From: Macrostomum hystrix
Lineage: Eukaryota > Animalia > Platyhelminthes
Length of the DNA: 64,000 bases
Assembly (NCBI GenBank): GCA_950097015.1
Contig: CATNEN010000010.1
Location: 992,001 to 1,056,000, forward strand
Reading direction: 5' to 3'
Position numbers and translations under genes: made by a program. Positions 519 through 22,948 of the stretch are shown here, in pieces; positions within the stretch are counted from its first letter, which is position 1; every line of letters starts with the position of its first letter. A model generated the notes under the pieces. It ran no database searches and was not told the origin of the DNA. It worked only from the letters and a program-made list of their open reading frames with translations.

Positions 519-3500
519 ATGCGCAGCGCTTTTACAGCCATCAGCAACAGCTGCCGTCTTCAACAGCAGCAGCAGCAGCTTCTTCTGCTTCGCCGGCAGC
601 CGCCAGTAGCTGCGCGAGCCGCCCCTGTCCGCACAATGCTCATGATGGGGCCGTACGATCCGCGCACACCGGACGACCAGGAGCCCGGCGTCATTGTGCG
701 CCTGAAGCAGGAGGTGCCGGAGGAAGCCAAACAGAGCTTCAAGCAGCGCATGGCGGATTATCGGGCCAAGCACCATCCCGAGCCACCCGCCTGTGACATC
801 GGCCTGCCGCGGTCGCTTCTTACCACCAAGCAGGCACAGGAGCCGGACCAGGTCAGGCCTGCCTTGTCAGCCGATATGTATAGAAAACAGTTTTTCATTA
901 GAGTTAACTGTTTCTCGATATTACCCGCCTGGTCATTTTTGTCCGGAAAACAAAAAAAACAAAAAATGGCCTTTCATCCGGTTGAATGTCCGGTGTCGGT
1001 CCGGAATTTCATCCGGAGTAACAGTCCAGTCTGGCTTTGGTCTGACGATAACCGTAGCAAAATCCGGAAGAAAACAGTAAAACCGGATCAGTTGCCTGAC
1101 GAATGGTGCCAGAAATGTCATACTTATTCTAAGCAAGTTCCTGCAACGCATATATATAGGATATAAATATTGTACTTCATATCTGTTGTATGGAGAATAG
1201 TTGCCTCGTATTCCCAATTTTCTGGTACTTGCAGCCAATTTACAATGCATAAGAACATGGAAGATGTTCATGAGAACATCACTGTTTCGTCGTTAGCAAT
1301 GAGCAAAGTGCAAATTAGCACTCTCTGCGCACAAAATTTTTTTTCGTACCAACTGGTACGAACACTCAGGAATGAAAACGTGTTGTGTTTAAATACGATC
1401 GAAAGGTAGAGGCCTCCACATGGCCAGTGCTTTGATATTTATATTCTCCGATTGTCAAATAAGTTAGTTTAGGTACAGGGGTAGCGTGTTGTACATTATT
1501 GGTATTTTATTTCGTTATACATAAGGAGTGATGTACGTGTGCAGTGCATGAGCAATTAAGTTTGGGCGCCAGTGCACAAGGTCGGCACTACAACACGCAA
1601 AACGACTTTCCAGTCAGGGACTTCAGTGGTAATTAAGCTGCGAATAGGGTAGCAGCGCGATTTTAAAAGCCGTCAATACACATGAGCCGACAATATCACG
1701 CACAGGCACACGGGATGCGCTCCAGGTTGTCGCATAGCCGAACGGATTACCCAGAAGCCGGCGCACGTGAGCGAAGTGATAACCGCGCTCTTTTGTCATC
1801 GCACCCACTCGACAAAGCGACTCTAGCGGGTCGAAATAGTCCTCTTCTACGGGCAGTATGTTGACCGTCATCTCCACGTCCTCACCGCCGACATGATAGC
1901 AGCCATGCGTGCCAGTGCTTACTGCGCAGTCGTAGTTTGCGGATCAGGTCACACATTTATTTTTCTGGATTGGCCGAGCCTGTGCAGCTGTAGACTCCAG
2001 CCTCTTCAAGACATGTTGCTGCGGGACTCCGGCTGCAACCTGCTGCGCCCTGACTGGCCGGCTGCGTGCTGGTCTGGTAAACTGTATAAAGTCTTCGATA
2101 GTAGCCTCAGGAACTCCAGGAAGCAGAGAGACCCGCTGCAAGCTCGGTACACTACCCAGCCATTCCTGACTAGCACCAGTAAGAAATGTGCGCCAAGCTT
2201 AGCGAACAATTTCTGTTTGGGCTGTTGGGCTGCAAACCGGAGTCCAGCCTGTCAACCCATGAATTTGCTGTAGGAGGTCGCAGTCCGAGGCTTGAGCTCA
2301 ACCATCTCCAGGTGGCCACGCACAGTTGGCAGTTCGTTGCGCCTTCTTGGCAGGCATATACTGGCGAAACAATACGCGCCCTCTAAAGAGCCACAAGCTC
2401 TTCGTCTACACTGAGCTCCTTTCCAGGCATGTAAACACGCCGCCAAATTTCAGAAACGATCGTGATGAAGCGCCTCACCTTTGCGAGGGGGTCCGACGCA
2501 TCAAAGCTGTTGCCATCGTAGAAACGAAGCAAACCTGCTGATTTGTTGATACCTGTCTCTGGGCAAGCAAACGGGTTGTTGAAAGAGTGGTGTTGCATAA
2601 AACTCTTTTTTGACCAGTAGTGGGTCACCTCCGGCTTCTTGACGACTCCCATGTATAGTTACATGGCGATAAACTTTGTCATGTCGTTAGCGGTGACGTC
2701 TTTCCATGTCGGAATCGCGACGGCAAGGAATTCAGATCATCTTGCAGTTCCTGGAATTTTCGCCATGCACGCGCATTCGTCCATTCGCACAGGCTTTACA
2801 ACAACTCAGCAGTGACGAACATTCGACTAAAGGCCACTGGATCGTCGTCCGCATTGTCGGGTAGCACCAAGCTGGGGCAGGACCTGGCGTGCCCGAAAAC
2901 GCGGGATTTGGATCCGGCTTCTGGTCATGGCCTGGCTCGCAGTGAACCCACCCATCAGTTTCAGCAGCTTCTGGTAGAAGCTGCGCTTCGTCTTTAGCCA
3001 GGGGGCTGACATCAGATTCGCCCTCGTCCGAGGTCCCCCTGCGCCCGTCACCTAGAGGAGCCTGAGCGCGCTTACGTTTCATGTACCTGCGCATGTATAG
3101 GCAACGCGTAGAGACGGGTCTTCCATTTTATTTTCTTTGTTTTACTCTTAAACATGTAATTATACTCGTAGATTGATTTATACATGCGATACTAGGATGG
3201 AATACTAAAAAATTGTAAGTACCCTAGGTTTGGTACCCCAAAACTGTTGTATCTGTTCATACCCATGTCTTCATAGCCACAATTAGGAGATTGAGCCTAT
3301 ATCTAAGGGACAGAAAAACTAATGAAATACGAGAGACACGTCGAAATATAGCCTTTTAGCTATAATTATATTTTGCGGATCACCCCGGACGTCAGTTTGT
3401 GATTAAATAATTTCTGCTGTACATAATCTATTATGCACATAATATATGTTCGATCTGTTTCGAAACCATGACCATTTATTCGTTGCCATTGATAGAAGCG

Positions 3501-6500
3501 CCTTCAGGAGCTGGAGCGGCTGTCCAGAAATCAGCAGCTTCGCGTCAACCTAGAAGCCATCGAGCTAGCTTGGGAGGCTGAGGCCCGCCCGGAGCACGCC
3601 CTGGCCGCCGCTAGGCACTACGCCATCATGGAGCACCTGTTCGGCTCCGGCTGCTTCTTCCATCCAGTGGTGCCGCTGCGGGCTCTCTTCCAGGATCCGG
3701 ACTTGCCCGGCAAGGTGCGCCAGGCCGCTCTGGGAAATATTCTGAAGCCGAGACAGGTGAGACAGCTGCCCCACGCCACTATTGACTTATTGCATCTATA
3801 GATTGGCCTAGACAAAGATTCTGCTGCAGCCAGTTGATGACGTAATTTGCGCCTTAGCTAGCTCCGGCTGAGTCGGTCGTGTGAGCATCCCTGCTCCACA
3901 GGCTACAAAGCCGGAGCTGAAGGCTGCTGAGAACTCCGAAGTCTGATGGCTGCTTTACTTAATTAGACATTTACCGGCAGTTTTTGGGTTAGCCAGCAAA
4001 TGATGACGTAATTTGCGCCTTAGCCTCGCGTGACGGACGAGCGCCTAACTCGTTCATCGTAAACGTCCGCGCAGCGGCTGCTGACACTTCTTTGTCTGAC
4101 CATTGCTGACTAGAAAAGCTCTGCACATGTCTATAGTTTGGTCGGAATCGTCGCTCTTACAATAAGAAATATTTCTAGTAAAAGGGGCAGCGGGCACTGG
4201 CTCATTATTTAGCGATAGCCGACCAGCGAGGAGGCAATTCTGCCTGTTCCGCCTACCCCTGAGCACACATGCACACAATGCCCTGACTTTTTCAAGCTCC
4301 GTTTTGACTCTTGCAAGCCAGCTCATATTGTGTATGATGACGTAATTTGCGCCTTAGCCTCGCAGGACGGACGAGCGCCTAACTCGTTAATTGCAAACGT
4401 CTGCGTAGCGGCTGCTGACACTTAACCGTCTGACACTAACAGCTTTTATTACTGAAGCCGCTTTTGAGCTGTGATTAATTTTTCTTTAAATGCCGGTATT
4501 TGTGGTACTCGTACTTTTTTCAGCCATGCCTCTGAATGATGACGTAATTTGCGCCTTAGCCTCGCGTGACGGACGAGAGCCTAACTCGTTTCTCAGAATG
4601 CGTCCGCGATTGGCTTTGCTGACACTAGCGGTCTGACACTGGCTGATAGAATTAAAGTACATTTTAAACTACTGCCTTTTGGGATAACACAAAGAGCGTT
4701 TTATATATAATAGAAATAATTTATTAAACTGCCTGATTGAGTCAGATGTACAGTCGCAGCTATTGCGCGACGCATCGTACGGCTGTTCAGTCCATGGACT
4801 GGGGAGACGCCACACCCCCGCTCAATTACCCCAGCTTATGCTGATACAACCCATTCTACAAATTGAAAATAACAGCTGGGTAATCTGAAGCAATTAAATC
4901 GAATCGAACCCAAGACCTTCAAGTCGTATTTAAGAAAATCTAACCACTTGGGCTACAATCCCTCTTGTACTGGAAACTGTACTGGAGTGCTGGAATTCCA
5001 AAAAAAATTTAAATGTCTATGTGTAAATCCCATAATTCAGGCCAATGCGTGATGACGTAATTTGCGCCTTAGCCTCACAGGACGGACGAGCGCCTAACTC
5101 GTTAATTCCAAACGTCCGCGAAGCGACTGCTGACACTGTTTTGTCTGACATTGGCTACGGTTTTAATTACAACAACAATAACTACTACTACTACTCTACC
5201 ACTACTTTAAAAAACGTTCATTCTTGCCCTTAAGCAAAATACTTGAGTCATTCAGCTGTAATATGGGTACCAAATTGGCTGGGGAAGAAATAAATGTACA
5301 TCTTTCTTAAGTGGGTCACATGGATTTTCACTTCGATCTAATTTCAATTCCGAAACCCAGTGCTCAGAGGCGCCGGAGCTGCGCTGGCAGGAGCCCCAGG
5401 AACAACAACCCGACAGCAGCCAGCCGAAGTGGACGGTGCTGCTCACCTGTCCAGACGAGCACCTGCAGTCGGCAGAGCGCGAGTACGCTCACTGGTTGGT
5501 CACTGACATCCCCGGCAGCGGCCGCCTGGCCGAGGGAAGTACACACCTGCCCTACCTGCAGCCGATTCCCCCGCATGGCACCGGCCTCCACCGTTACGCC
5601 CTGATACTCTTCCTGCAGTCCGGCCCGCTAGACCTTCCGCAGCTGCAGAGCCCATCCGGACAGGTATCAACTCGACTTTTGTATCTATGCTTAATCCTTC
5701 TGCCTGCCTCACCCCTAATTCCTCCCTGCCTCATCCCTCACCCTCCACCCTCCCAGCCTCATCCTCCGCCCTCCCTTCCTCACCCTCACCCTCCACCCTC
5801 CTTGCCTCACTGTCCTTCCCTTCGCAATCCCGCAGGCAGCGGACTGTCTGTCGGATCGGGACTTCAGCACGGCCGAGTTCTACCGGCGACACGAGGAGCA
5901 GCTGACGCCCGCCGGGCTCTGCTTCTTCCAGGCCGCCTGGGACGAATCGGTGCGCAGCGTCTACCGCCACCGCCTGTCAGACGTGGGCGTGGAGCCCGCC
6001 TTCGAGTTCCGCTGGCCTGCGCCCTACCGGCCCAAGATGCAGGAGTTTGCCTTCTCAGAGCCATTCGACATGTGAGCAACTCGATTTGAGATTTCTGCAT
6101 CTTGGGTCTCTTCCACACATTCCCCACACTCACCTGATCCTCAGGGGCGTTCCCCACACTCACCTGATCCTCAGGTGCATTCCCCACACTCACCTGATCC
6201 TCAGGGGCGTTCCCCACACTCACCTGATCCTCAGGTGCATTCCCCACACTCACCTGATCCTCAGGGGCGTTCCCCACACTCACCTAATCCTCAGGTGCAT
6301 TCCCCACACTCACCTGATTCCCCACACTCCTTATCCCGAGTTGCATTCCCCACAGTCACCTAATCCTCAGGCTCAATCTCCTAATATTTGCTTCCCGCAT
6401 TCTAACCGGTCCTGCCCTCCGTTTCAGCTACCTGGACAAATACCGTGACGTGAAGGACATGGCGGAGGAGACGCTAAAGGAGAAGCTGAAGTCCGTGCAC

Positions 6501-6635
6501 CCGTTCCGCGGCCGGCTGAAGCCGGAGTCCAAGTACCCTCTGGCCGTGCCGGTGGAGGGCTACCAGCCGGCCTGGCTCAAGGAGCGGGAGAAGCAGAAGA
6601 TCCTGCGCAAGGGGCAGTGGAGCGAGCTCGACTGA
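519..6635 (+). CDS. MRPL38: Mitochondrial ribosomal protein L38 (PEBP fold), ~446 aa. Exons 519-851, 3496-3756, 5361-5663, 5836-6071, 6428-6635
   Basis: Spliced translation gives DIGLP, HYAIMEHLF, HWLVTDIPG, PYLQPIPPHGTGLHRY, TPAGLCFFQAAWD and YLDKYRD, matching mL38 motifs. All junctions are GT-AG with consistent phases. Confidence 0.9.
1510..3094 (-). pseudogene. Decayed piggyBac (PGBD4-like) transposase in MRPL38 intron 1
   Basis: Fragments WKDVTANDMTKFIAM*LYMGVVKKPEVTHYWSKK and PGKELSVDEELVAL (first catalytic Asp) plus a Cys-rich C-terminal remnant; many stops and frameshifts. TIRs and TTAA TSD not found. Confidence 0.75.
3826..3953 (+). ncRNA. SNORD16: Box C/D snoRNA, U16/SNORD16/snR87-like, copy 1
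   Basis: C box TTGATGA at 3834; guide CGTAATTTGCGC followed by D' CTTA; internal stem GCTCCGGCT/AGCCGGAGC; D box CTGA; terminal stem GCAGCCA/TGGCTGC. Confidence 0.8.
3990..4112 (+). ncRNA. SNORD16: Box C/D snoRNA, U16-like, copy 2
   Basis: ATGATGA at 4000, same guide and CTTA, C'-like CTGCTGA, D box near 4096, terminal stem TAGCCAGCAA/TTGCTGACTA. Confidence 0.8.
4187..4275 (-). mobile_element. 3' fragment of the tRNA-derived SINE family also seen at 57.9 and 63.0 kb
   Basis: Shares CAGCGAGGAGGCAATTCTGCC...CCTGAGCACAC with the two longer copies. Confidence 0.65.
4328..4440 (+). ncRNA. SNORD16: Box C/D snoRNA, U16-like, copy 3
   Basis: ATGATGA at 4334, invariant guide and CTTA, CTGA near 4430; terminal stem weak. 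Confidence 0.75.
4520..4646 (+). ncRNA. SNORD16: Box C/D snoRNA, U16-like, copy 4
   Basis: ATGATGA at 4536, invariant guide, CTGA at 4633, terminal stem TCAGCCA/TGGCTGA. Confidence 0.78.
4850..4965 (-). mobile_element. Degenerate tRNA-derived SINE head
   Basis: The minus strand has A-box-like TAGCCCAAGTGG and B-box GGTTCGATTC but no intact cloverleaf. Confidence 0.5.
5041..5156 (+). ncRNA. SNORD16: Box C/D snoRNA, U16-like, copy 5
   Basis: GTGATGA at 5049, invariant guide, CTGA at 5145, terminal stem GCCAATG/CATTGGC. Confidence 0.8.
6116..6365. repeat. 30-bp minisatellite in MRPL38 intron 4
   Basis: TTCCCCACACTCACCTGATCCTCAGG(GGCG/TGCA) tandem units. Confidence 0.9.
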
Positions 6636-7228: not shown

Positions 7229-7999
7229 ATGGCCGACAACTGGGAGGACGAGGCTGACAGCCTGACAACCGGGGTGCCGCTGCCCGTGGCCCTGAAGACC
7301 GACCGCTGGGAGGGCGAGGATGAGGAGGACGTGCCCGACGCCTGGGACGCCGAGCCGGCCGCCCCGGCTGCCGCCGCCTCCGCGCCCGCCGCCGCCGCCG
7401 ACAAGAAGCCAGCCGCCACCACGAAGCCGAAGAAGGGCAAGAAGGCGCTGGCCGAGGCGCTGGAGAAGAAGAAGGCCGAAGCAGAGGAGCGGAAGAAGCA
7501 GCCGGCGGCCGACGCGATCTCTGACTCGGCGGGAGTGGCTCCCGGATTGTCGGCCGAGGAGCAGCGCAAAATCCAGGAGGAGTCCGACCTGCTCATTGCG
7601 AAGGACACTTTCGGGGTGAACGACACCGCGAAAGTTGCGGCCGCCGCTGGCCTCGACCCGGAGAAGTCCATCGACATGCAGCAGCCCAGCAGCAAGGAGG
7701 ACTTCGACCGGCTCAGCCGTCTGCTCAGCCAGAAGCTACGCGGCTTCGAGGCATCGCCGCACTACGCTGGCTTCATCGAGGGCGTCTACAGGGAGTGCGC
7801 GCTGGAGCTGGACCAGGAGTGCCTGCGCCGCCTCTCCACCATGTTCACCGCCCTGGCCGCCGAGAAGCAGAAGATGCAAAAAAGTGCCAAGGGCAAGCCG
7901 AAGAAGACCAAAGGCACCCTGAAGGTCGAGCGGGATCCCGCTGGCGCCATTGGCGGCGAGGACTACGATCAGTACGACGATTTCGACGATTTCATGTAA
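7229..7999 (+). CDS. EIF3J: Eukaryotic translation initiation factor 3 subunit J, intronless, 256 aa
   Basis: MADNWEDE...DRWEGEDEEDVPDAWD acidic N-terminus, QEESDLLIAKDTFG, PSSKEDF and the YDQYDDFDDFM C-terminus are typical of eIF3j. Confidence 0.92.
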   Translation: MADNWEDEADSLTTGVPLPVALKTDRWEGEDEEDVPDAWDAEPAAPAAAASAPAAAADKKPAATTKPKKGKKALAEALEKKKAEAEERKKQPAADAISDSAGVAPGLSAEEQRKIQEESDLLIAKDTFGVNDTAKVAAAAGLDPEKSIDMQQPSSKEDFDRLSRLLSQKLRGFEASPHYAGFIEGVYRECALELDQECLRRLSTMFTALAAEKQKMQKSAKGKPKKTKGTLKVERDPAGAIGGEDYDQYDDFDDFM

Positions 8000-9255: not shown

Positions 9256-9426
9256 ATCCCATCAGTTTGCTAACACCCCTCACCCACTACCTTACACACG
9301 CTTTACCGATTAGCACATGCTTGTCCCTCTACCATCTTCGGCACTTATGTGTACAGGGCAGTGAAGCGCAGTGGGCAAAAATCTCAGACTGAAGCCTACA
9401 GCCTTCCCACATTCCTTTTGCAGCCA

Positions 9427-9723
9427 ATGGACAGCCTTGGTTCCAGCGGCGGGTCAGATGCTGATAGGCGCCAGATCCTTGAACAGCTGCAACAGCAGGC
9501 GGCGCTAAACCTCATTCAGTCTCTGGTGAACACCTCCACTGAGAAGTGCTTCGAAAAGTGCGTGCCCAGCCCGGGCGGGGAGCTGGCCACATCGGAGCAG
9601 AAGTGCGTCAGCATGTGCCTGGACAGGTACGTTGAGACCTGGAACATTGTCAGCAAAGTCTACGGCAGCCGCATCGCCAGGGAGAGCGGCGGCGGTGGCG
9701 GCGGCGGCATCTCCTTTAACTGA
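9427..9723 (+). CDS. TIMM13: Mitochondrial small Tim chaperone Tim13, 98 aa
   Basis: Twin CX3C (CFEKC...CVSMC) and SEQKCVSMCLDRYVETWNIVSKVY, resembling Tim13 [24 protein letters not shown]. Confidence 0.88.
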   Translation: MDSLGSSGGSDADRRQILEQLQQQAALNLIQSLVNTSTEKCFEKCVPSPGGELATSEQKCVSMCLDRYVETWNIVSKVYGSRIARESGGGGGGGISFN

Positions 9724-21569: not shown

Positions 21570-22948
21570 CTACAGCCCGATGGTGACGCTGTTCTGATGT
21601 CCCAGCGGGGCGGCGCGAAAGGCAAACCCGCCGCTATCATCGTCACTGCCGCCGACGCCGCTGCCGCCTGCGCCGCCGCGGCGGCCAGCACAGTGAAGGC
21701 AGGAGCAGCTGCAGCAGGCGCCGGCGAGCGAGCGGCCCAGCAGGCGGAGGGCGCGGCGGAAGTCGCTGAGGCAGGCGCAGTGCAGAAGGAATCGCCAGCT
21801 GCAGTTGCCCACGGCTGTCCAGAAGGTGAAAAAAATGGCCGCTGGCGGCACGGAGCCGGGAGAGCCGGCGTCGGCCACCTGCAAGGCGGCCCAGACCGTC
21901 CACGTGACCAGTTGGACTGCAGTGGCTGCAAACACGTCCCGGTAGAAGGACTCGCGCGTGTTCTCAAAATTTCCGCCACCGTCGCCGAAGTCGCCAAGTT
22001 CGGCTTCGAAACTCAGGAAGCGGAGGCGTTTCAGGCGAAAGTCCGGCGTCAGCAAGTAGCCATTGGTGACGATAGCGGCAAGCAGGGCGGGCAGCAGAAC
22101 CACGGAGCACACGGCCAGGTGATAGCCCGACTCCTGGGGTGACCAGCGGAATTTCATTGAGTCCTCACCTGCCCCCCAATAGGCTATGACCCTTTTAGGG
22201 TCATTGTGTATGATCCTGTTGGGGTCATTATGTATGATCCTGTTGGGTTCATTGTGTATGATCCTGTTGGGGTCATTATGTATGATCCTGTTGGGTTCAT
22301 TGTGTATGATCCTGTTGGGGTCATCGTGTATGATCCTGTTGGGGTCATAGGCGATCGTCTTGACAAAGAAGCCACATAACCAGACCTCACCTGTCCCCAG
22401 TTCACAAAGCAGGTTCCGGTGGCATTGGAGAACGAGGCGGCAGTGGCCGGGTCGCGGGACACGGCAGTCGGCAGGGCCACCAGCAGGGCGAGGCCGGTCA
22501 GGGCGGCCAGCCAGCAGGCGGAGCGGGTGCGAGACAGCAGCGTCGGGTAGCGGCCGGGCCAACGGAAGGCGGCGAAATGGTCACTGGCAGCGGCCAGCAG
22601 GAGGTAGGCGGCCAGCTGCAGCAGTAGGACGGCAGCATATGCGGCCAGCTCGCAGCCCCAGTGGCCGGACAGTCTGGCCGAGGCGCTGGCCGGGTCAAGG
22701 CTGTCCGCGGCGGCCAGGGGCAGGAGGGCGAGGCCGGTCAGCAGATCGACGGCCGCCTGGGCGGCGAAGAAGACACGATTGGTGTGGCGCAGCGCGGCGC
22801 GGCAGCGCGGCAAGGCAGCGACGGCGAGGACGGCCAAGTTGCCGCCGGTGCTGAGCAGGCACAGCAGCAGCAGGTAGGCGAACTCAACGCCGTTTAAAGG
22901 GCTCGGGAGTGCCATGGAGGGCCGACCGCAGAGTCGGCTGTCCGCCAA
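21570..22948 (-). CDS. Atypical rhodopsin-family (class A) orphan GPCR, ~373 aa. Exons 22948-22391, 22133-21570
   Basis: Seven hydrophobic segments; TM1 GN, TM2 AAVDLL, TM3 Cys (WGCE), ECL2 Cys (TCFVNW), Cys-rich tail. The DRY position reads SDH. Confidence 0.72.
22195..22348. repeat. 24-bp minisatellite in the GPCR intron
   Basis: GTGTATGATCCTGTTGGGGTCATT tandem. Confidence 0.85.

Follow-up and report, generated by a model that had tools for sequence, protein, structure and literature searches.

This locus raises the question of which RNA is encoded by five related elements that follow one another within a single intron of Macrostomum hystrix, and of how an animal might obtain separate RNAs from such an arrangement. 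The window, i.e., the whole stretch of 64,000 nucleotides that was analysed, had been described in an earlier note as carrying five diverged U16/snR87-like box C/D snoRNAs in an intron of a mitoribosomal protein gene. Judged from the sequence, the elements are very probably five paralogous U16/SNORD16/snR87-type box C/D snoRNA genes that arose by tandem duplication in intron 2 of MRPL38 and have been kept by selection. They constitute an ordinary RNA in a less common but already known gene layout.

By homology of its exons, the host is a five-exon mL38/MRPL38 gene, and all five snoRNA units lie inside its intron 2, as the earlier assignment to a mitoribosomal protein gene had it. Homology searches, carried out with each exon individually and not with the spliced protein, yielded the following gene model:

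519-851, plus strand: MRPL38 exon 1; 79% identity to M. lignano L010 3575-3820; donor GT at 852; the start codon is not settled.
3496-3756, plus strand: MRPL38 exon 2; acceptor AG at 3494-3495; translation aligned to PDB mL38 residues 119-177, ending in ...KPRQ at a phase-0 donor (GTGAGA from 3757); 79% identity to M. lignano L010 4247-4515, with the same donor in both species.
3757-5360, plus strand: MRPL38 intron 2; 1604 nt, with GT...AG borders at 3757 and 5360, homology-supported exons on either side and the whole array within.
5361-5663, plus strand: MRPL38 exon 3 (PEBP domain); phmmer match to mL38 in the PDB (E 2e-19, residues 181/207-288); Pfam PBP match (E 1e-8); 81% identity to L010 6738-7015; donor GTATCA at 5664.
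5836-6071, plus strand: MRPL38 exon 4; 83% identity to L010 7057-7293; frame and splice sites read.
6428-6635, plus strand: MRPL38 exon 5 including the stop codon; 84% identity to L010 9035-9241; frame and stop read.

As in an intronic cluster, the five snoRNA genes share one spliceosomal intron, all of them on the plus strand and in the sense of the host. The distance from the donor site to the first unit is 69 nt in M. hystrix and about 31 nt in M. lignano. The M. lignano MRPL38 gene model comprises 433 aa.

Each of the five units displays the same order of elements: a TGATGA C box, the guide CGTAATTTGCGC, a CTTA D' box, an internal hairpin, a TGCTGA C' box, 10-12 variable nucleotides and a CTGA D box. 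Exact matches to the guide 12-mer number five in the window (at 3841, 4007, 4341, 4543 and 5056, always on the plus strand), against a chance expectation of about 0.1. The units and the one repeat between them are arranged as follows:

3826-3953, plus strand: u1 (type A); 7-bp terminal stem 3826-3832/3947-3953; C box 3835-3840; guide 3841-3852; D' 3853-3856; 68-nt internal hairpin region; C' 3925-3930; D-guide 3931-3942; D box 3943-3946.
3990-4112, plus strand: u2 (type B); stem 3990-3999/4103-4112 (6+3 bp); C box 4001-4006; guide 4007-4018; D' 4019-4022; C' 4079-4084; D box 4096-4099.
4320-4444, plus strand: u3 (type B); weak two-part stem 4320-4323/4441-4444 and 4330-4332/4434-4436 (3+4 bp); C box 4335-4340; guide 4341-4352; D' 4353-4356; C' 4413-4418; D box 4430-4433.
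4520-4646, plus strand: u4 (type B, the most diverged); 7-bp external stem 4520-4526/4640-4646; C box 4537-4542; guide 4543-4554; D' 4555-4558; C' 4617-4622; D box 4633-4636.
4706-4970, no strand: dispersed repeat that enlarges the u4-u5 spacer; not part of the snoRNA genes.
5041-5155, plus strand: u5 (type B); 7-bp stem 5041-5047/5149-5155; C box 5050-5055; guide 5056-5067; D' 5068-5071; C' 5128-5133; D box 5145-5148.

The earlier description thus holds for the full box set and for the terminal pairing, both found in 5/5 units, so that C and D boxes are joined throughout by a terminal or external stem. It also holds for the stems, whose sequences differ while pairing is mostly kept (6-9 bp in u1, u2, u4 and u5, only the weak 3+4 bp in u3), and for the spacers and D-guides, which diverge from unit to unit. 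In the predicted fold of u1 the terminal stem is closed; the base preceding its C box is T (U in the RNA) and not a purine. Flank duplex energies amount to -13.0 kcal/mol for u4 and -11.8 kcal/mol for u5. Outside the boxes, u4 shows 62-75% identity to the remaining type B units. A tRNA or SINE origin was considered for the u4-u5 spacer and rejected: ARAGORN finds no tRNA there, and the stretch is a dispersed repeat: when positions 4700-5000 were compared with the species' own genome, about 1459 candidates turned up, spread over many contigs, and the 40 matches that were scored showed 72-84% identity.

A search of the whole window at Rfam gathering thresholds gave no match. In permissive mode, SNORD16 (RF00138) was the only plausible family match in the window, with 30 bits for u1 (E 0.0034, the best in the window), 21.6 for u3, 19 for u4 and 17 for u5, all against a gathering score of 45; u2 was absent from the matches at E up to 10. 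The M. lignano units likewise remain below 45, at 33.9, 30.4, 26.9 and 23.7 bits. The SNORD16 alignment spans the C box, the guide, the CUUA D' box, the internal stems, C' and D, and the CTTA that directly follows the guide in 9/9 units of both species matches the Rfam SNORD16 consensus column. Since all scores fall below the gathering threshold and no other plausible family presents itself, the units are probably a functional and evolutionary equivalent of U16/SNORD16/snR87 and not a formal Rfam member.

Against the 18S rRNA of the same genome, the guide forms an unbroken run of 11 Watson-Crick pairs (439-449), in which A443 faces the fifth nucleotide counted from D'. When guides were shuffled, only about 1% matched 18S equally well. 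This agrees with the target proposed earlier by the +5 rule, the A equivalent to human Am484 and to yeast Am436, and the 18S flanks of A443 are the same as at the human site. With this match, the CUUA box and SNORD16 as the sole plausible family, the U16/snR87-like identity proposed in the earlier note stands, except that no unit reaches the gathering score. Human SNORD16 guides 18S A484 (PMC6124571), and snR87 and U16 are orthologues sharing a non-consensus D' box and a conserved extra pairing next to the target (PMC3116282).

A candidate for such an accessory element can be discerned in the internal hairpin. In five of six type B units the loop and closing base, GCGCCU, are complementary to 18S 435-440. 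This hexamer is absent from u4, where the loop reads AGCCUAA, with its GCCU opposite 18S 435-438, and u1 carries CCUGCU, complementary to 18S 432-437. Taken singly, the matches of u1 and of these five type B units are not significant (shuffle P 0.13-0.23). In the first M. lignano unit, m1, CUUCCUUA is complementary to 18S 422-429 with a shuffle P of 0.003. The GCCU loop also occurs in the Rfam SNORD16 consensus and in the RPSA-hosted units discussed below. Accessory pairing was scored by a contiguous-match test, as RNAduplex, applied to the complete internal regions and the 18S sequence on either side of the site, allows long looped pairings and was uninformative. The earlier suggestion that the variable D-guides might have new targets was not borne out: the five M. 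hystrix and four M. lignano D-guides, compared with the 18S, 5.8S and 28S rRNAs of the M. hystrix genome, gave no match above chance (best 7-10 pairs, several with G-U; P 0.2-0.98 against shuffled guides).

Comparison of the host gene between flatworms, as the earlier note had advised, bears on the conservation of the array. M. lignano retains the MRPL38-eIF3j-Tim10 synteny, and four units are found in the corresponding intron of its MRPL38, which starts at the same donor site; the array is thus real and conserved, being common to M. hystrix and M. lignano. Within this intron, alignment of the two species is confined to the units, at 84-88% identity, as compared with 79-83% for exons, and no spacer sequence is conserved that might represent a candidate promoter. 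The positional orthologue of u1 is m1, with an unchanged stem sequence; m2 is 86% identical to u2 over 101 nt and 88% identical to u5 over 89 nt; and the fourth unit, m4, at the M. lignano L014 locus has CTGG as its D box. Constraint is also visible between copies. Boxes and guide are invariant, the copies having diverged by 17-38% elsewhere, and a 26-nt block is unchanged in six type B copies while 43% of the other columns vary (P ~4e-7). Terminal flanks pair better with their cognate partners (mean -13.7 kcal/mol) than with non-cognate ones (-9.0 kcal/mol; permutation p ~1e-4), and the internal hairpin contains two compensatory pairs, among them a G-C to A-U change in u3. These patterns support purifying selection on the units.

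The proposal that the array is a snoRNA-resembling repeat or mobile element without function, to which the tandem structure and the dispersed repeat in one spacer might lend some colour, is close to refuted. Pattern, covariance-model and BLAST searches across the 220-Mb genome found five U16-type sequences, all in this intron, and no second U16 locus; covariance-model matches on contig 39 proved to be a 19-bp minisatellite. A corresponding search for SNORD18 gave no match in this genome at E 0.01 or below. The array is therefore not a transposon, and the hundreds of dispersed, transposon-like copies that the earlier note had envisaged as a counter-argument do not exist. In addition, the same intron position is occupied in M. 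lignano while the spacers have been replaced, and the guide exactly fits a universally conserved methylation site. It is unlikely, if a more serious proposition, that only one or two units, e.g., the conserved first unit u1, are functional and the others are decaying duplicates contributing nothing. Not every copy need be active, given that the terminal stem of u3 is weak (flank duplex only -4.7 kcal/mol), that the stem of u4 is set back 10 nt from its C box and one of its loop bases changed, that the internal hairpin of u5 has two pairs broken by A-C mismatches, and that the mutated D box of m4 indicates that copies can be lost. Yet C, guide, D', C' and D are unchanged in 5/5 units even though type B copies differ by 16-35% elsewhere, neutral copies of that age would be expected to carry several changes in those 36 nt, and cognate stem pairing has been maintained via different sequences.

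A further alternative concerns release of the RNAs. The units might be made without being individually released, exonucleases halting at the outermost particles and leaving snoRNA-ended long RNAs (sno-lncRNAs) or multi-unit precursors, or unannotated small exons might give each unit an intron of its own. Two snoRNAs per intron yield sno-lncRNAs in mammals, and the one-per-intron rule is dominant in animals (PMC11028025), which speaks for either version. Nonetheless, every unit possesses its own closing stem, as expected of independently matured particles, the absence of conserved spacer sequence between the two species makes conserved internal exons unlikely, and the u1-u2 spacer measures only 36 nt. 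We regard this alternative, in both its versions, as rather improbable.

For five separately matured U16-type snoRNAs, the following pathway can be envisaged. The host pre-mRNA would be transcribed first, and the terminal stem of each unit would juxtapose its C and D boxes to give a kink-turn, nucleating a particle of Snu13, Nop56, Nop58 and fibrillarin. The long terminal or external stems of 6-9 bp probably permit assembly independently of splicing, since the spacing to the 3' splice site that is optimal in vertebrates is found for none of the units. Splicing and debranching would be followed by cuts in the spacers that separate the units and by exonuclease trimming to the protected particles, leaving RNAs of roughly 105-128 nt. 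The D' guide of each RNA would then pair with 18S 439-449 and direct fibrillarin to 2'-O-methylate A443, the counterpart of human Am484. The short conserved hairpin element may add pairing to 18S just upstream of the target, through the GCCU-containing apical loop in type B units and CCUGCU in u1, and the D-guides are probably targetless spacers.

A bolder reading, which we put forward tentatively and consider possible but somewhat doubtful, is that splicing-independent, endonuclease-dependent maturation of several box C/D snoRNAs per intron is routine in Macrostomum and that the five-copy amplification compensates for a host switch. The amplification to five may offset a move in which the only U16 gene left a host with high expression, encoding a cytoplasmic ribosomal protein, for the more weakly expressed MRPL38. 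If so, the endonuclease route would resemble that of plant and yeast polycistrons and would be unusual for an animal, the long external stems would serve as an assembly signal, and the freely drifting D-guides would be raw material for new guides.

In vertebrates, U16/SNORD16 is hosted by an intron of RPL4, and human RPL4 contains a single copy. The Macrostomum units share with vertebrate U16 (RF00138) the C box, the guide core GUAAUUUGCG, CUUA as an unusual D' box, the nucleotide targeted in 18S, the internal hairpin between D' and C' with its GCCU-containing element, and a D-guide without known target. They differ from it in their non-guide sequence (17-30 bits against a cut-off of 45), in length (about 105-128 nt versus about 100), in the C' box UGCUGA, in the presence of five copies per intron and in having MRPL38, not RPL4, as host. 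The yeast counterpart, snR87, is an independently transcribed single gene with no detectable sequence similarity beyond the guide. It resembles the Macrostomum units in its orthologous rRNA site, non-consensus D' box and short guide, and probably also in its short extra pairing near the target (PMC3116282).

With regard to gene organization, the array resembles the Drosophila H/ACA, rice and Chlamydomonas clusters, in which several genes, often tandem-duplicate isoforms, lie in one spliceosomal intron on the host strand. It departs from them in that it consists purely of like box C/D units, belongs to a flatworm and is housed by a gene for a mitochondrial ribosomal protein. Work by Huang et al. 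from 2004/2005 reportedly deals, as its titles have it, with intronic snoRNA gene clusters. The rarity claimed earlier was overstated: a single snoRNA per intron is the prevailing arrangement in animals, but clusters within introns are already acknowledged as a category (PMC11028025), and U16 hosts vary. On two metagenome contigs, L017 and L020, U16-like units scoring 37 bits against SNORD16 occur in introns of uS2/RPSA in two paralogous copies; the L020 host exons were recognised as uS2 by a PDB sequence search, a Pfam search of the exon fragments giving no match. These units possess the same C box-guide-CUUA module and GCCU hairpin loop. Unlike the M. hystrix array, they are distributed singly over two different introns, their host encodes a cytoplasmic ribosomal protein, and their Rfam scores are slightly higher. 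The host gene of U16 therefore changes, from RPL4 in vertebrates and uS2/RPSA in the metagenome contigs to MRPL38 here.

From yeast and vertebrates through to flatworms, the guide of U16/snR87 has been retained along with its odd D' box and probably the accessory element, and a missing, well-supported rRNA-modification guide is added to the annotation of two Macrostomum genomes. Neither the RNA nor its target is out of the ordinary, so the find is of value for annotation and comparative work and not as a new concept. A literature search found no paper on Macrostomum snoRNA genes, none of the eight that mention both terms carrying snoRNA in the title. The array furthermore offers a compact natural substrate for studying how multiple snoRNAs of a single intron are parted from each other in an animal, a question that can be tested, Macrostomum being amenable to RNAi. 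A further contig, L016, contains two SNORD16 and three SNORD18 matches and looks vertebrate-like.

The guide 12-mer CGTAATTTGCGC occurs five times in the window, always on the + strand (at 3841, 4007, 4341, 4543 and 5056), against 0.1 copies expected by chance. Each copy belongs to a unit (u1–u5) of common plan, in which TGATGA (C box), the 12-nt guide and CTTA (D′) precede an internal region of 56–68 nt that folds into a hairpin, followed by TGCTGA (C′), a variable stretch of 10–12 nt and CTGA (D). With the full box plan in all five and an invariant guide, the five-unit array described in an earlier note is confirmed. All five units also have complementary flanks.

Terminal pairings of the five units (window coordinates)
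3826-3832 / 3947-3953, + strand: u1, 7 bp
3990-3999 / 4103-4112, + strand: u2, 6+3 bp
4320-4323 / 4441-4444 and 4330-4332 / 4434-4436, + strand: u3, weak 4+3 bp
4520-4526 / 4640-4646, + strand: u4, 7 bp, away from the boxes
5041-5047 / 5149-5155, + strand: u5, 7 bp

The stem sequences vary while pairing is kept, the first pair being G-C in u1 and U-A in u4. Across nine units of two species (M. hystrix and M. lignano), mean pairing of cognate 5′ and 3′ flanks is −13.7 kcal/mol versus −9.0 kcal/mol for non-cognate ones (permutation p about 1e-4), which agrees with the proposal that each unit has its own, mostly preserved terminal stem, u3 being the weak case.

Homology searches, run exon by exon, aligned exon 3496–3756 with PDB mL38 residues 119–177 and exon 5361–5663 with residues 181/207–288 (E 2e-19; PEBP domain present), so that the host is indeed a mitoribosomal protein gene, mL38/MRPL38. 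Splice sites and frames define five exons (519–851, 3496–3756, 5361–5663, 5836–6071 and 6428–6635) and thereby place the array in intron 2 (3757–5360), on the sense strand. Downstream lie eIF3j (7229–7999), whose closest relative is that of Macrostomum lignano (70% identity; the next ones about 40%), and a small Tim protein (9349–9723). The other introns have features of their own. Intron 1 (852–3495, 2.6 kb) contains several ORFs of 60–120 aa on both strands, without Rfam match; introns 3 (5664–5835) and 4 (6072–6427) are C-rich with strongly negative GC skew, and repeated peptide-like ORFs (HTHLILRGVP...) in intron 4 and the sequence beyond suggest a short tandem repeat there.

Rfam at gathering thresholds reported no match. 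Under permissive settings SNORD16 (RF00138) is the sole plausible family, its alignment covering C box, guide, CUUA D′ box, internal stems, C′ and D. The family named in the earlier note was recovered, but every score lies below the cut-off of 45 bits (u1 30, u3 21.6, u4 19, u5 17; u2 unlisted), and the units fail the formal score test. Target tests were run on the genome's own rDNA. The guide forms 11 contiguous Watson–Crick pairs with 18S 439–449, a match that about 1% of shuffled guides equal, and A443 stands opposite the fifth nucleotide upstream of D′. The 18S sequence around A443 is that of the human Am484 site, and the proposed Am484-equivalent target is upheld. Human SNORD16 guides 18S A484 (PMC6124571), and snR87 and U16 count as orthologues whose D′ box departs from the consensus (PMC3116282). 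Together with the SNORD16 alignment and the 18S pairing, these published facts argue that the units are functional equivalents of U16/snR87 and, very probably, its diverged homologues.

The D-guides differ from copy to copy and from species to species, and against the 18S, 5.8S and 28S of this genome even their best matches do not surpass those of shuffled guides; the search for new targets recommended earlier therefore yielded none above that level. Most likely the D-guides are spacers, as is likewise assumed for the D-guide of vertebrate U16. The rDNA repeat also contains a full-length U1 snRNA gene (Rfam U1, 151.7 bits; L008, a locus of contig 15, 4713–4875, minus; contig position about 21712–21874). 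It lies in the spacer that separates the 18S of one unit from the next unit's 28S, on the strand of the rRNA genes.

The MRPL38–eIF3j–Tim10 order is shared with four M. lignano contigs (L010, L012, L013 and L014), the orthologous exon ending at the same junction (...PRQ followed by GTGAGA). The cross-flatworm comparison of the host gene that had been advised, run on M. lignano, revealed four units (m1–m4) in the same intron: m1 is orthologous to u1 (type A) by position, with a nearly identical terminal stem, m2 and m3 resemble u2–u5 (type B), and m4 differs in its internal region. Exon identity between the species is 79–83%, and the introns align at the units only (type B, 84–88% over about 100 nt; u1 versus m1, 90% over the first 39 nt). 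No alignment was obtained for the M. hystrix and M. lignano spacers, whose minisatellites or repeats differ, and the divergence claimed for spacers and D-guides holds. Two minisatellites of the M. lignano intron, between m1 and m2 (L010 about 4650–5215) and past m4 (about 5745 to beyond 6100), have no counterpart in that of M. hystrix. The M. hystrix u4–u5 spacer has received a dispersed repeat (about 4706–4970; roughly 1459 candidate copies genome-wide, 72–84% identity), in which ARAGORN called no tRNA and which has no counterpart in the M. lignano intron.

The units are under selection. In the six type B copies no change occurs in the first 26 columns, which take in the C box, guide and D′ plus the four bases that follow, while 43% of the columns beyond vary (P about 4e-7); same-species copies are just 65–84% identical outside the boxes, and the internal hairpin has two compensatory pair changes. 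This conservation across species and between copies indicates that the common ancestor already had two or more unit types in its MRPL38 intron, and that all M. hystrix copies have retained intact boxes, although neutral copies so diverged would have lost theirs.

In the type B units a portion of the internal region, with the apical loop CGCCUAA in it, is near-identical in both species. Loop and closing base (GCGCCU) are complementary to 18S 435–440, with GCCU opposite 435–438, right against the guide duplex; u4 lacks this 6-nt match. CCUGCU of u1 lies opposite 432–437 and CUUCCUUA of m1 opposite 422–429. A GCCU-containing loop recurs in the Rfam SNORD16 consensus and in U16-like units of metagenome contigs, and extra pairing beside the target comprises 4 bp in snR87 and 10–11 bp in U16 (PMC3116282, PMC6124571). 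In shuffle tests P was 0.13–0.23 for u1 and for every type B unit except u4, and 0.003 for m1; on these figures the matches are no more than suggestive of a hairpin element that may pair with 18S beside the target.

The units are unique to this intron. Throughout the genome (220,453,370 bases, 42 contigs) a 22-nt pattern, two mismatches being allowed, found just these five copies, BLAST with u1 and u2 matched the array only, and a covariance-model search returned u1 and a 19-bp minisatellite on contig 39. A brief Rfam search of this genome for SNORD18 gave no match at E 0.01 or below. The hundreds of dispersed copies against which the earlier note had cautioned were thus looked for and five, in one intron, were found in 220 Mb, which rules out dispersed repeats. 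The apparent second SNORD16-like locus was rejected as a run of false weak matches to the minisatellite (93 copies of AGACTACAGCATCAGTGAC; L011 457–2225, equal to contig 39 about 5172256–5174024).

The units would be transcribed together with MRPL38, each assembling its own particle on a kink-turn closed by its stem; cuts in the spacers, followed by exonuclease trimming, would part them, and the products would direct methylation of 18S A443. The u5 D box ends 212 nt upstream of the 3′ splice site, and no unit lies near that site. According to Hirose and Steitz, mammalian box C/D units distant from the branch point reportedly depend on extended stems at their flanks, and their assembly does not require splicing, a model that the long stems here fit. 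Rated below this separate release are the production of snoRNA-ended long RNAs from the intron and the existence of hidden small exons that would give each unit an intron of its own. Activity of only some copies is likewise rated lower. Copies can still be lost, as the D box of m4 in L014 (5937–6030) is CTGG instead of CTGA, with an altered 3′ flank; in the other three M. lignano loci the first guide base of m4, which does not pair, is T instead of C.

Animals mostly have one snoRNA per intron, as the earlier note said, but intronic snoRNA clusters are already a named class (PMC11028025). The array is real and conserved and belongs to a well-known RNA family, in which it had not been described before; its gene layout is known but is that of a minority. 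A literature search for snoRNA genes in Macrostomum turned up no paper. Drosophila is said to have intronic snoRNA clusters, going by the titles of cited papers. U16 does not keep to one host gene: in a metagenome scan for the C box–guide–CUUA module, U16-like pairs turned up in separate uS2/RPSA introns on two contigs, L020 (459–561 and 1453–1554, 37 bits each) and, on the minus strand, L017. These have one unit in each of two introns, whereas M. hystrix has five in a single MRPL38 intron. The same scan found two SNORD16 and three SNORD18 matches on a vertebrate-type contig (L016).
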